64,000 nt of DNA from Macrostomum lignano (lineage: Eukaryota). The position numbers and the translations under genes are program-made. This document shows positions 31,147 to 64,000 of this stretch, piece after piece. The notes below the pieces were generated by a model. It saw only the letters and a program-made list of their open reading frames with translations, was not told the DNA's origin and made no database searches. The DNA lies in contig NIVC01000032.1 in the NCBI GenBank assembly GCA_002269645.1, forward strand, positions 496,001-560,000. Reading direction: 5' to 3'. Each line of letters starts with the position of its first letter. Position 1 is the stretch's first letter.

Positions 31147-32655
31147 ATGAGTCGTCAAAGCAGCGCAGATCAGCCAAGTTGTGGCGCAGCCTCCGCAAAA
31201 TGTTTCATCTGTGACCAATCCGCAGTTGGTGTAGGTCCATTGTCAGGCTGTCACCTCTGCGACCGGCATCTTGAATTAGATGTGTCTCAAAAAGTGAAAC
31301 TAGATGTTGCTGAGCAGAGGCGCGCCTACTTGCGAGAGAGACAAAATCCAGGTGCAATCAGCAGTGCATCAAATGCAACGGAACCAGAATCTGACGTTGC
31401 GCGTTTGCGCCGGGAAGTTTGTCGTAATCTGTTTCAGGTGAATTACAGATTCGATTTGGTACAGCAAGGCGTCGAATCGTTACGTGGCAGGGTGACTGGC
31501 CAGCTTGAAGGTCTGCTCGGGGCAGTGCAAAATGAACAGCAGCAGGCAGCTGATACACATAATTTGGCGGAGCTGTTTGAGCTAATGCAGTCTATAAATA
31601 TTCCGCACGCTAGTTTAGATACAGACTTTGAGACCAATTCGCTTGGAGAGCAAACTAACGAGTTGAAACTGCAGCTGCGGCTTCTAGGACAGCTCGAGCG
31701 GCTGGTTGGTATTTGTGCGAGGCCAAGGCGCAATGAATCGTACGTTGTATTGGAGGCGAGCAGATCCTACACGAGCGAGGTGAAGCTCGATGGTCTTATT
31801 GAGTGGCTGGCTGTGTGCAGCGACACCAGCGGATTTTTTGGTGACCCGTCAGGCCGTGTAGTTCGCGGAAATTCTGTTAACCAAGAAAATGTGCCTCTGT
31901 CTCAGCCGTGCGTCTTCGCGCTAATAAATCATTTGGAGGATCATCTTCTAGTGGTCTCGCTAGATGGCTCACAGAAGCTGCGGTGCTACTGTGACCTACA
32001 AGACTGGAATGGCAACATCTGCGGCCTTCACTGCGACCGTCAGCTGCTGTTCATTGCTCAGGATGACACAGTGACAGTGACGGACTTGAGCGGTCGCGCA
32101 TTGCGTCAAATTCGTCCAGACATCGAGAGCTTCGGCAAAATTAATGGAATCGGCGGCAACGCAGCCTCCGTGTTTGTGTCCAGTGGAAACAAAATTGCTG
32201 CATTCAGCAAAGCGACTGGTCAGATAGAGACGGTCATCACGCTGTCTCAGCTTCCTCATGCTGGTCTGGGAAATCTGACGACTCACGACAACTGCATTCT
32301 GGTGACAGACTGGAATGCACATCAAGTGCACAGAGTGCGCATCGACACTGAACAGCTGGTCGCCTCACTGCCGAATCCAAGTGGCAATATTCGTCAATTT
32401 GGTCACCTTAAAGATGTGGCCGTCGACCGGAGAGGCCGGCTATTCATTAGTGAATGGAAGGGTCACTCAGTGCGAGCCTTGACTGTTGACGACGGGTTGC
32501 TGCTGTGGTCTATGGGTACTCCTGGCGAGAGCGGCAGCGGCAAGGGCAGCCTTGAATATCCTTGCGGTCTGTCAATGCTGACGGATAGCCATTGCGAGCG
32601 TCTTGTGATAGCTGACTATTATAACAGCCGATTGCTGATTGTTAATGTTCATTAA
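31147..32655 (+). CDS. Zinc-motif (C-x2-C-x12-C-x2-C-x2-H) / coiled-coil / NHL-type beta-propeller protein, paralogue 1, intronless, 502 aa
   Basis: Open ATG-TAA frame; CFIC...CHLCDRH; helical Leu/Gln/Glu region; C-terminal NHL-like blades (DVAVDRRGRLFISE, GTPGESGSGKGSLEYPCGL, LVIADYYNSR). Confidence 0.85.
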   Translation: MSRQSSADQPSCGAASAKCFICDQSAVGVGPLSGCHLCDRHLELDVSQKVKLDVAEQRRAYLRERQNPGAISSASNATEPESDVARLRREVCRNLFQVNYRFDLVQQGVESLRGRVTGQLEGLLGAVQNEQQQAADTHNLAELFELMQSINIPHASLDTDFETNSLGEQTNELKLQLRLLGQLERLVGICARPRRNESYVVLEASRSYTSEVKLDGLIEWLAVCSDTSGFFGDPSGRVVRGNSVNQENVPLSQPCVFALINHLEDHLLVVSLDGSQKLRCYCDLQDWNGNICGLHCDRQLLFIAQDDTVTVTDLSGRALRQIRPDIESFGKINGIGGNAASVFVSSGNKIAAFSKATGQIETVITLSQLPHAGLGNLTTHDNCILVTDWNAHQVHRVRIDTEQLVASLPNPSGNIRQFGHLKDVAVDRRGRLFISEWKGHSVRALTVDDGLLLWSMGTPGESGSGKGSLEYPCGLSMLTDSHCERLVIADYYNSRLLIVNVH

Positions 32656-33614
32656 CATCGAGGCTTTTTTTAAAAAGTTCCACTGCTCAGAACTGCAATT
32701 TATGGTAAGAAAACTTGCTAATCCATACAATATTAATGCTAATATGTTACTCCTGGCAAACAGCTATAAGTATATAGTATCTGTAATATGCAATATTTTG
32801 GAAACGAGTACCATATGCTGCCGCCTGTCTCTCGGTTGACCGCACTCTGACATAACTAAAATCATCACCGGAAATCAAAGTGTCAGAAATCAAGTTCCGT
32901 GGCGAGAATTCTTGCTTTGAAATTCTCTACTTAATTAGGTTTTAACCAGAGAGAAGAGCCTTAAACCGCTGGGTATTGCAAGCTGCCCACTACTACATGT
33001 TAATTAAGGGCACTACTCTTTTACGTTATCAACGCGACTGGCTTTACGCAAAAATACACTATTGAGGTATTAATTTTTCATTTATTCAGGGACAAAATGC
33101 TGCTGACTTTTTGTTTGAATCATAGATAATAAAGTATGATTTTGTTGGCAGGGTTTTTTAAAGCACGAAACTCCCAATATCTCACCTGGACTTTTGAATT
33201 CCAGTTGAAGCAAGTGTATATTTTGTTCGCGATGCGCTCACCAGTTGTAACCAAGCTATTTTATTTCACAAAGTGCTACCGGAGACTGACAAACAAGCGA
33301 ATTTTATTTCCTATCCTTTTAGTGTATTTTTTCTAGACCGAACTTGTCTATGGCCAAACCCCATTCAGCGCTGTGCAAAAAAGCAAATATTTGCGAAATC
33401 CGTTTATAAAGTTCAAGTATTTGTCACTCTGAAGCAATACTTTTGAAAAGAAAGGTTTCTCGGCGAATACTAAACATGTTTATCCATGATTGCAAACAGC
33501 TTAAATGCATAATACATTATTTTTTTAATAAAACTTATCTGTTGCTTGCTATTCGAGCTAGATAAATTTATAAAATACCTTGAAATGTATTTCATTTTTT
33601 TAAGTACAGGCTAG

Positions 33615-62190: not shown

Positions 62191-63014
62191 AAGCGGCCGA
62201 GGGCTTCGAATGTTGTCTCCGGCTTTTAAAGTACACTCAGGATAAAGTGACTGAACTCTGACAGAACTATGAGGTTTCTGGTTTACTAATAACACTTTCC
62301 GGGTTTTTCGGAGTCATTTTTGTTATACTGTTAAGAAACTGTTTATTTTAGTTTTGAAGTCTTTTTTTGTTTTACTATTTAGAAAATATCCGGTTTAGGA
62401 CGCGCGAAAATTTGAAACGATTGAAACAGCTCTTCTTGATTGTGTTGGTGGGTTTATTCTAATTAACTGGGTCGTTTTTTATCGTTTTCTGTTTCTTTAT
62501 TCTTTAGCATTATGTCCACCCATCGACAAGTGATGTCATTGGTGGTTTAGCAACGTGTGAAGTAGGCACAAGCAGGCAGAAGTGCCGTTATTTTTCGTGG
62601 CATTGGGGACGCCATTTTGTTTAAATGGGTATGAATTCGTTTGAATGGGCGTGACTTTGTTTGAATTGTTTTTTGTTTGTTTGCAATGTCACTGGGTTAA
62701 TGTCGCTGCAATACCCTTAAGCAGATGAGAGTTCAGTCCCTGCTGGCAAAAGCGATCTTCCAGTCCTCACCCGCAGCAAGAAATAAACAAATTCGCTTTG
62801 CCTCGCACAGAGCCAAACGCGCAGATGCTTTGCGCCCTCTGCAGCTGGGAAAATGCGCGGTCTCTGGGCTGCGAACTGTCACCTGCCCTGTGCCAATGTA
62901 AACTGTGAGTCCCCACCCATACTGCCGCTGCCGCTCGCGTACTTAAAAGGCAGCCCTGTGCTAGCCACCAGCTTTCGCTTTTAAACAAAAAATTGAAAGA
63001 CCTGCGGTATTGCA

Positions 63015-64000
63015 ATGAATCTTGGAGACTCCAGCGACAGCTCGAGTTCGGACGCGCCTCCCGCTACCCCAACTCCTCTCTGCATCATCTGCGACCAAGC
63101 TGCAGTCGGTGTGGCTCCGTTCTCCCGCTGCCACATGTGCAGTCAACACCTCAGTGTCGATGTGGCCAATCTATTCAAGCTCAAGGAGGAGGTCGAAGAG
63201 CTGCTGCGTGCCTACTCACAAGAGTCACAAGAGTCACAAGACTCACAAGACTCACAAGAGTCACAAGAGTCACAAGAGTCACAAGACTCACAACAGTCAC
63301 AAGAGTCACAAGGCGCAGCAGGTGCAGATAGCCGTGCAGCGCTGCTGCGACACCGACAAGACGCTGAGTCGCTGCGTCGTCTCGCTCTCGACATCCAACA
63401 GCAGCTGCAAGACGTCAATCACAAATTCGATTTGGTACAGCAACACATCGACTCGTTTCGTAGCAGGGTGACGGGCCAGCTCTCAGGTGTACTTGAGGCA
63501 GTGCGTGTGTGCGAGCGGGACCTCGAGGACGTCTCCAGCTACAAGCAGGAGGTGGCCACGGCGGAGGCTGCAGGCGACATGGCGGAGCTGCTTCAACTGG
63601 TGCAGTCCATGCACGAATCGCTTGGAGACTTGGAGGCCGACTTTGAGAGGTCAGAGCGGCTGCTCAGAGACCAGAGCGACAATGAGGAGCTGCAGCTGCG
63701 GCTTCTGGGCCAGCTTGAGCGGCTGGTCGGCATTTGTGCGGGACGCAGTGGAGAGGGCGACTGGTCGAGAGACGCTGCGGTGACCGCGACATCCGATGAG
63801 ATAGACGCTGCTCACAGACTGCTGTTCGATCCGATGGTCTTCAGTCACGAGGTGAAGCTGGATGACCGTGTTGAATACCTGGCTGTGTGCAGCGACACCA
63901 GCGGATTCGTTGGTGACCGGTCAGGCCGTGTGGTTCCCGCCGACTCAGCGGGAGACGGCAGCGAGGCTCTGCCTCAGCCCTGCATCCTGGCATCATTTCT
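63015..64000 (+). CDS. Zinc-motif / coiled-coil / NHL-type propeller protein, paralogue 3 (runs off the window end)
   Basis: ATG AAT CTT GGA... open to the window end; nearly identical to 48064 onward (CIICDQAAVGVAPFSRCHMCSQHL). Absent from the ORF track because no stop lies within the window. Confidence 0.88.
   Translation, partial: MNLGDSSDSSSSDAPPATPTPLCIICDQAAVGVAPFSRCHMCSQHLSVDVANLFKLKEEVEELLRAYSQESQESQDSQDSQESQESQESQDSQQSQESQGAAGADSRAALLRHRQDAESLRRLALDIQQQLQDVNHKFDLVQQHIDSFRSRVTGQLSGVLEAVRVCERDLEDVSSYKQEVATAEAAGDMAELLQLVQSMHESLGDLEADFERSERLLRDQSDNEELQLRLLGQLERLVGICAGRSGEGDWSRDAAVTATSDEIDAAHRLLFDPMVFSHEVKLDDRVEYLAVCSDTSGFVGDRSGRVVPADSAGDGSEALPQPCILASF

Follow-up and report, generated by a model that had tools for sequence, protein, structure and literature searches.

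What kind of gene family diversifies in dense patches at one end of its product while staying nearly uniform at the other? The question is raised by a 64,000-nucleotide (nt) stretch of the Macrostomum lignano genome (assembly GCA_002269645.1, contig NIVC01000032.1; hereafter, the window), in which a first-pass annotation had placed three intronless paralogues, beginning at positions 31147, 48064 and 63015 and encoding a zinc motif, a coiled coil and an NHL-like propeller. All three genes, c1, c2 and c3, are found at these starts, on the + strand. The evidence described here supports a family that evolves by birth-and-death, in which gene conversion homogenises the stalk and diversifying selection keeps the top face of the propeller hypervariable. 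On balance, although with little more than even confidence, we regard c1–c3 as members of a Macrostomum-restricted, tandemly amplified, cytoplasmic and RING-less TRIM-NHL-like family, whose NHL face is diversifying as a recognition repertoire. The genes and their parts (all on the + strand; amino acid, aa, numbers are those of c2 unless stated otherwise) are:

31147–32655 (+): c1, a complete single open reading frame (ORF) of 502 aa plus stop; divergent subfamily, annotated as P0011
31201–31269 (+): zinc module of c1, C19-x2-C22 ... C38-x2-H41
31777–32652 (+): NHL propeller of c1, from alignment to the c2 propeller; weak Pfam NHL match
48064–49725 (+): c2, a complete single ORF of 553 aa plus stop
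48130–48198 (+): zinc module of c2, C23...H45
48190–48750 (+): helical stalk of c2, a putative coiled coil (aa 43–229), with helices 43–78, 90–174, 177–206 and 209–229 predicted by AlphaFold2 (AF2)
48751–48846 (+): linker of c2 (aa 230–261), of low confidence and rich in indels; synonymous divergence steps up within it, and it holds ERMLEP/HRLLFDP
48847–49722 (+): six-bladed NHL propeller of c2 (aa 262–553), holding the 24 selected sites
63015–64000 (+): c3, of which the 5' 986 nt (328 codons) lie in the window, open throughout and cut by the window end
63081–63149 (+): zinc module of c3, from alignment with the c2-like copies
63837–64000 (+): start of the c3 propeller (first 54 codons), with the DDRVEY and GDGSEAL variants

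The coding regions of c1, c2 and c3 are each a single uninterrupted ORF. In the four annotated paralogues that are comparable (P0001, P0004, P0005 and P0006) the gene span equals the product length times three plus 3 nt, so that these are single-exon genes, and the description of the family as intronless holds. The c1 and c2 proteins are 52% identical, c2 and c3 89%; the DNA similarity of c1 to the other copies begins at 31776, and a tblastn search found no fourth copy in the window. The c1 protein (P0011) maps exactly onto contig NIVC01000032.1 of GCA_002269645.1. The best matches of c2 (80–86% identity) are M. lignano proteins named 'hypothetical' or 'B box-type domain-containing'; the c2 product has no gene call in the public collection, and c2 and c3 are both absent among the protein matches and seem to be unannotated in the assembly.

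The C-terminal half of the product had been called NHL-like, and structure and profile comparisons agree. AF2 was given an alignment of 21 family members, and in the resulting model of c2 residues 262–553 form 26 strands with a predicted local distance difference test (pLDDT) score above 90. When this model was compared with the PDB by Foldseek, the top matches were the NHL domains of Drosophila Thin (6xg7, 6d69) and of TRIM71 (8j72, 7qrx, 9jur), with a root-mean-square deviation (rmsd) of 3.2–3.6 Å and a target-normalised template modelling (TM) score of 0.76–0.78; matches to G-beta/WD40 proteins were rejected as generic propeller-plus-helix similarity (rmsd of about 7.7–12.8 Å). A family profile run against the PDB also found the NHL domains of TRIM71 (E=1.5e-19) and Thin (1e-18), as well as TRIM3 and TRIM2 (about 1e-11). 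The Pfam NHL model detects just one or two repeats, with 28.1 bits for c2 (cutoff 20) and a borderline score for c1. AF2, Foldseek, the PDB profile search and Pfam thus all point to a six-bladed beta-propeller of NHL repeats, of the kind seen in TRIM71 and Thin.

The first-pass annotation had reasoned that a low dN/dS evenly spread over the propeller would speak against a diversifying family. The mean ratio of non-synonymous to synonymous change (omega) is indeed below 1 (0.78 by the Nei–Gojobori method, 0.885 under model M0), but the spread is far from even: 145 propeller columns are invariant, and 29 show four to eight residue states. Codon likelihoods were computed for ten intact c2-like copies with our own implementation of GY94/F3x4 on a neighbour-joining (NJ) tree. 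The log-likelihood (lnL) rose from -3826.12 under M1a to -3700.68 under M2a (likelihood ratio test, LRT, 250.9; p about 3e-55), with 8.8% of the propeller sites assigned to a discrete class at omega of about 10. Recombination can inflate site-model tests, and for this reason the propeller was also cut into four segments of about 72 codons, for each of which a separate tree was built; the LRT values were 41, 69, 33 and 64. As a cross-validation, five of the sequences served to define the hypervariable sites and the remaining five to measure them, giving an omega of 1.65 (range 1.07–2.58) at these sites and of 0.50 elsewhere; a minimal-change count gave 2.07 and 0.57, respectively (in the two fixed halves, the binomial p was 0.05 and 0.011). 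Sites were taken as selected when the posterior P(omega>1) exceeded 0.8 by naive empirical Bayes, a threshold passed by 24 codons under M2a:

c2 aa 272, 274, 300, 302, 316, 319, 343, 344, 346, 360, 372, 387, 425, 427, 441, 443, 444, 473, 488, 489, 521, 522, 542 and 544 (+): selected sites

As a whole the copies are under constraint and are thus not decaying: the propeller omega is 0.44 between c2 and L002, and omega is 0.36–0.43 between c1 and c2. An omega>1 class of sites, concentrated on a surface of ligand-binding type, is found in a lineage-specific multigene family, as in diversifying recognition receptors of the TRIM5 or finTRIM sort. As for the clusters of c2/c3 differences reported at the start of the propeller, DGYVGW/DDRVEY (aa 270–275) and GYFSKAI/GDGSEAL (aa 300–306) do lie there and coincide with family-wide hypervariable sites, but ERMLEP/HRLLFDP falls in the low-confidence linker.

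The selected sites are not scattered over the propeller. With the inter-strand loops numbered along the chain, so that consecutive loops alternate between the two faces, odd-numbered loops account for 20 of the 24 sites and also for residue 274, which falls just within a strand (Fisher p=0.0015). The register was set from the motifs 'GvAvD' (strand a), 'iyVaD' (strand b) and 'rvqvF' (strand c), with strand 262–268 as the closing strand d of blade VI; on this model, the odd-numbered loops would be the d-a and b-c loops, and hence the top face. The d-a and b-c loops by definition form the top surface of an NHL domain, which in Brat is the RNA-binding platform (PMC4015489). At the selected positions Tyr is enriched 15-fold, Trp 4-fold, Arg and Cys 2.7-fold, and Lys and Asn about 2.2-fold, whereas Val and Ile are depleted, a residue bias that, judged from sequence, is the composition of an interaction surface. 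The 2.2–2.7-fold enrichment of Arg and Lys at variable top-loop sites is suggestive only of an electropositive, RNA-binding face.

The closest relatives in structure and in sequence are RNA-binding TRIM-NHL propellers, and the variable face is the one with which those relatives bind RNA; c1–c3 could accordingly be ordinary, sub-functionalised repressors of the Brat/LIN-41 kind, each with a different set of endogenous mRNAs, shaped by past neofunctionalisation and no continuing arms race. We consider this distinctly improbable, because the copies are very recent (synonymous divergence, dS, of 0.1–0.2) and yet show up to 8 residue states per site and a class of sites at omega of about 10, and because they undergo tandem birth-and-death with pseudogenes. 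In addition, there is no conserved orthologue outside the lineage among the best 150 profile matches listed (see below), and the vertebrate NHL TRIMs are a conserved group (PMC2533329).

The N-terminal half behaves differently. From pooled Nei–Gojobori estimates over the codon alignment of the ten intact c2-like copies, aa 1–228 have a non-synonymous divergence (dN) of 0.032 and a dS of 0.040, against 0.124 and 0.159 for the propeller, so that synonymous divergence is about 4-fold lower in the N half. In a 40-codon scan dS stays between 0.015 and 0.07 up to aa 240, jumps to 0.24–0.26 at aa 241–320 and is 0.10–0.22 beyond. Constraint at the protein level cannot make dS this low; the conserved stalk described in the first-pass annotation is thus real as an observation but is not the work of constraint alone. 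Moreover, over its N half c2 differs less from a copy that lies on a different contig (dS 0.022) than from c3 next to it (dS 0.055), and a Sawyer-type runs test was significant at p<0.05 for 16 of 45 pairs, with about 2 expected, an indication of mosaicism. Variants of c3 also recur elsewhere: HRLLFDP in the copy on L004, and GDGSEAL in the second L002 copy. The similarity among paralogues begins 1–2 nt before the ATG (48063 and 63013), also in comparisons with copies on other contigs, and ends at 49686–49693, about 30 nt before the stop; the flanks cannot be aligned save for dispersed repeats, though the coding sequences (CDS) are 89–92% identical. On this sequence evidence, concerted evolution through gene conversion is the most economical reading, and its effect is greatest in the first ~720 nt of the CDS. 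Given the step at aa 240 and the mosaicism in the runs test, gene conversion would make much of the contrast between stalk and propeller, and the onset of c2/c3 differences at the propeller would therefore in part mark a conversion boundary.

Homology from 1 nt before the ATG, in genes that are intronless, led us to examine whether the copies are retrocopies. Spliced-leader remnants and shared upstream DNA were searched for, and no common leader or poly(A) pattern was found; a retroposition origin was rejected on these grounds, in favour of DNA duplication with homogenisation limited to the CDS. Subsets of the M. lignano copies share upstream DNA with a splice-acceptor-like 'tttcag' about 20 nt before the ATG.

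Could mosaic gene conversion, together with relaxed constraint, be the whole explanation? The clustered differences would then be patches taken over from divergent paralogues or from decaying copies, and recombination, multi-nucleotide changes or errors of assembly would have produced the omega>1 class spuriously. The mosaicism is real, as the runs test and the recurrence of HRLLFDP and GDGSEAL in L004 and L002 attest, dS is raised at the hypervariable codons, four L001 copies are broken, and the assembly is a long-read assembly of a polyploid. Conversion, however, relocates variants and does not create a non-synonymous excess at the same 24 codons. The excess survives both cross-validation on disjoint sets and per-segment trees, while the other codons stay at an omega of about 0.5; the sites are limited to alternate loops and carry the residue bias of an interface; and the ten analysed copies are intact ORFs. 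We therefore regard an account by conversion and relaxed constraint alone as very unlikely, and diversifying selection on the propeller, against a background of conversion, as the preferred reading.

How large is the family, and how far does it extend? The same genome contains at least 13 intact or open c2-like copies and at least four broken ones, on four contigs, and besides these at least 10 subfamilies of greater divergence. Eight copies are crowded into 54 kb of L001 (NIVC01000200.1), four of them intact and the other four frameshifted or truncated; L002 and L005 (NIVC01001900.1) have three copies, L004 has one, and L006 has two as well as a divergent one. This last paralogue (L006, 12616–14226) shares 47% identity with c2; its ORF retains coiled coil and propeller but has no N-terminal zinc module. 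The frameshifted or truncated L001 copies (10001–11643, 17454–18107, 34555–36196 and 46774–48515) may be pseudogenes or may reflect long-read indel errors. Also on L001, the annotated P0003 (10001–44269) is chimeric: its 5' end belongs to one copy and its 3' part to a second copy at a distance of 32 kb.

For relatives elsewhere, 1.84 billion representative proteins were scanned by HMMER with the family profile, and the best 150 matches were listed. Besides the family's own P0008, P0009, P0011 and P0013, 12 of the 150 span most of the profile or the whole propeller in one stretch. Ten of these 12 were traced (P0057 and P0060 were left out): eight are further M. lignano subfamilies and two, P0019 and P0027, come from short environmental contigs (JGI/IMG, 1.6–2.1 kb). 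The latter match the whole propeller in a single stretch, at about 36–37% identity to c2, and may be a sign that further animals not yet sampled, perhaps other macrostomids, have the family too. The remaining matches listed are giant multi-NHL proteins, aligned to the last two blades only. Within the best 150 matches, then, the sequence comparison supports a lineage-restricted family, the full-length relatives traced being M. lignano proteins and the two environmental contigs. The family had been put forward as lineage-specific, with close orthologues conserved across Metazoa, in a known housekeeping role, as the finding that would overturn this view; none appears among the full-length matches traced within the best 150. 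A profile search with the N half matched two fragments and did not recover the family's own members, the prefilter probably being swamped by low-complexity or coiled-coil words, so that its outcome carries no information.

A signature of selection does not by itself tell one antagonist from another, and the partner in an arms race could be reproductive: the family could act in sperm, oocytes or germline stem cells of this outcrossing hermaphrodite, under sexual or genomic conflict or in gamete interaction. The TRIM-NHL proteins Mei-P26, LIN-41 and Brat are described as acting in the germline and in stem cells (PMC9070667, PMC4015489), and reproduction-related genes of Macrostomum as evolving rapidly (PMC7336406). 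A secreted seminal or surface role is nevertheless unlikely, since the hydrophilic N-terminus offers no signal peptide and the proteins have no transmembrane segment; a search of the supplements to a Macrostomum paper on reproduction did not find the family's identifiers either, and no positive evidence for such a role was found. A reproductive conflict thus seems to us an unlikely source of the diversity, if one that deserves to be kept in mind.

Several observations weigh against the view that c1–c3 form a functional, diversifying recognition family. Because c2 and c3 are unannotated, transcription of both is unproven. Sites 300, 302 and 372 lie in even-numbered loops, blade I has two extra strands, and the assignment of faces rests on strand order and on an a-d register read from sequence motifs. 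Synonymous divergence is raised at the selected codons (dS 0.42), and within two codons of them (0.20), relative to elsewhere (0.13); such a pattern is consistent with selected variants protecting the sites linked to them against homogenisation, and a local mutational or micro-conversion share may also be present. Recombination among paralogues inflates site tests, an effect that segmenting and cross-validation reduce and do not remove, and the site models were fitted with our own code, NJ trees and naive empirical Bayes, not with PAML or HyPhy. Finally, in a hidden-polyploid, long-read assembly some of the 'paralogues' could be homeologous or uncollapsed copies, and some of the frameshifts could be assembly errors.

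What precedes the propeller in these proteins? The motif C-x2-C-x12-C-x2-C-x2-H reported in the first-pass annotation is present in c1, c2 and c3. In an alignment with distant M. lignano subfamilies, however, only C23, C26, C42 and H45 are kept, as C-x2(4)-C-x15-C-x2-H; C39 and H40 are confined to the subfamily of c2, and in two close L001 paralogues Leu-Ser replaces Arg-Cys at the 'third' cysteine. The motif thus stands for the three copies, and across the family it shrinks to a CCCH set. AF2 models the 54-aa module with a pLDDT of 94.8, as short beta hairpins and, from C-x2-H onwards, a helix, and the CCCH ligands presumably form a one-zinc site. Several paralogues carry the UniRef label 'B box-type domain-containing'. 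Zinc site 1 of B-box2, as we read its consensus, is C-x2-H-x15-C-x2-C, and the family spacing, C-x2-[CH]-x15-C-x2-[CH], equals it; the family keeps four ligands, as against the 7–8 of a two-zinc B-box. No B-box match was obtained from Pfam (whole proteins and N-module profile) or from the PDB profile search, and Foldseek returned nothing significant for the 54-aa model, the best match being zf-HIT at E=0.69, with the PML B1-box at rank 19 (E about 3). From the sequence, B-box membership of the module is unproven.

Pfam returned no RING match at E≤1 in the three translated ORFs (c3 being partial), only about 18–22 residues lie N-terminal to the zinc motif in c1–c3, and the annotated single-exon paralogues begin at the same Met. 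The N-terminal RING of TRIM/RBCC (RING, B-box, coiled-coil) proteins is thus missing, as had been noted from the ORFs.

The zinc module passes directly into some 190 residues of stalk, whose helices (43–78, 90–174, 177–206 and 209–229) were modelled at a pLDDT of about 60–78. Heptad periodicity is significant for aa 90–174 (p=0.0015; best period 3.55; in one register, 75% of the a/d positions across 85 residues are hydrophobic) and for aa 177–229 (p=0.0005). Long AF2 helices with a 3.5-residue hydrophobic periodicity are therefore found after the zinc module, where TRIM/RBCC proteins have their coiled coil, and the coiled-coil reading of the stalk, already made in the first-pass annotation, is a reasonable one for this model. 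Residues 202–258 fall below a pLDDT of 50, and aa 230–261 were taken as the linker proper. Between the zinc module and the long helix is an in-frame S-Q-[ED] repeat (c2 aa 68–87, 48265–48324; c3 about 63216–63311), of low AF2 confidence; it is 12 residues longer in c3 than in c2 and differs in length in every paralogue.

How might such a protein work? We picture the stalk as forming a TRIM-like coiled-coil dimer that would present two propellers. Gene conversion would homogenise the stalk and much of the CDS, while selection would shield the variable contact residues, and the family would then amount to a germline-encoded repertoire of binding specificities for diverse or fast-evolving targets. 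The most plausible targets would be viral or transposon RNAs or proteins, or a different partner in antagonistic co-evolution. Without a RING, such a protein would not ubiquitinate autonomously but would sequester its target, repress translation or call in a separate effector. Our more specific and decidedly tentative proposal, which we would sooner doubt than assert, is that the repertoire consists of sequence-specific RNA or protein binders that police viruses or the abundant retrotransposons of M. lignano.

If this proposal holds, the family would be an invertebrate counterpart of TRIM5/finTRIM built on a different recognition fold, its diversity upheld by a balance of gene conversion and diversifying selection like that of major histocompatibility complex (MHC) or resistance (R) genes. 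Amplification of a family with the NHL top face as its hypervariable surface would show that an RNA-binding propeller is open to recruitment as an adaptive recognition module; the NHL-bearing TRIM relatives are textbook conserved developmental regulators. As a candidate innate-recognition system it would be a tractable one, M. lignano permitting transgenesis and RNA interference. The genes offer a clean natural case of concerted evolution and diversifying selection acting on the two halves of one intronless gene, and the paralogues are a ready panel of natural variants for NHL binding specificity. Literature searches combining Macrostomum with NHL or tripartite motif returned nothing relevant, and the Mlig identifiers of the paralogues do not occur in the full-text literature searched or in the supplements of M. 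lignano papers.

The neighbourhood of the three genes is rich in repeats. A 4.9-kb (TAGA)n array occupies 41211–46141, and more than 20 other micro- or minisatellite arrays are found in the window (for example 5–817, 5654–7630, 10144–12573, 27353–28418, 33618–35117, 36485–38090, 39569–40828 and 61360–62040); tandem repeats make up a large share of the sequence and give rise to long spurious ORFs such as 'SIYL' repeats. The interval from c1 to c2 includes a multi-exon gene with WD40 repeats (about 35209–39454, +; gene call in L003), whose last-exon ORF (38825–39442) has WD40 matches, and a 178-aa acidic ORF without a Pfam match lies upstream of c2 (about 46229–46765, +). Between c2 and c3 is a young Ty3/gypsy-type long terminal repeat (LTR) retrotransposon (55133–61113, - strand), with 191-nt LTRs (55133–55323 and 60923–61113) that are 99% identical, an uninterrupted 1214-aa pol ORF (56557–60201; Pfam protease, reverse transcriptase, RNase H and integrase) and a 217-aa gag-like ORF (60315–60968) without a Pfam match.

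Among known systems, the closest is that of the TRIM-NHL proteins (class VII: TRIM71/LIN-41, TRIM32/Thin, TRIM2, TRIM3, Brat, Mei-P26 and NCL-1), which share with the M. lignano family a C-terminal six-bladed NHL propeller. The order of zinc module, coiled coil and NHL domain, with no filamin domain, is that of TRIM32/Thin. RING-less TRIM-NHL members exist, Brat being one. The M. lignano family differs from TRIM-NHL proteins in having no RING and one CCCH site in place of a two-zinc B-box, and in being intronless, tandemly amplified, lineage-restricted and under diversifying selection, whereas the canonical TRIM-NHL genes are few, conserved and developmental regulators (PMC2533329, PMC4015489). 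In its mode of evolution the family resembles the group 2 (SPRY) TRIMs, which are fast-evolving and have an antiviral role (PMC2533329). TRIM5alpha, finTRIM and other B30.2/SPRY TRIMs likewise combine a coiled-coil scaffold with a C-terminal recognition domain that has positively selected loops, and TRIM5alpha and finTRIM likewise form lineage-specific tandem expansions; unlike them, however, the M. lignano family uses NHL, not SPRY, for recognition and has no RING E3 ubiquitin ligase, and the immune or antiviral role put forward for it in the first-pass annotation is a conjecture. The large, lineage-specific F-box and MATH-BTB expansions of nematodes and plants also join a conserved scaffold-binding domain to a substrate-recognition domain under site-specific positive selection, and have been proposed to target pathogen proteins. 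Their folds are unrelated, and they are cullin-ligase adaptors. The first-pass picture of a diversifying sensor, with a conserved stalk and a variable head, is thus upheld for the head, where the selected sites gather on one face of the propeller, and has to be amended for the stalk, which is homogenised, most probably by gene conversion. Since the vertebrate NHL TRIMs are conserved and the fast antiviral TRIMs use SPRY, a diversifying family based on NHL is a variation on a known theme: the new part is the hypervariable NHL top face in an amplified family, and it does not make a new kind of system.

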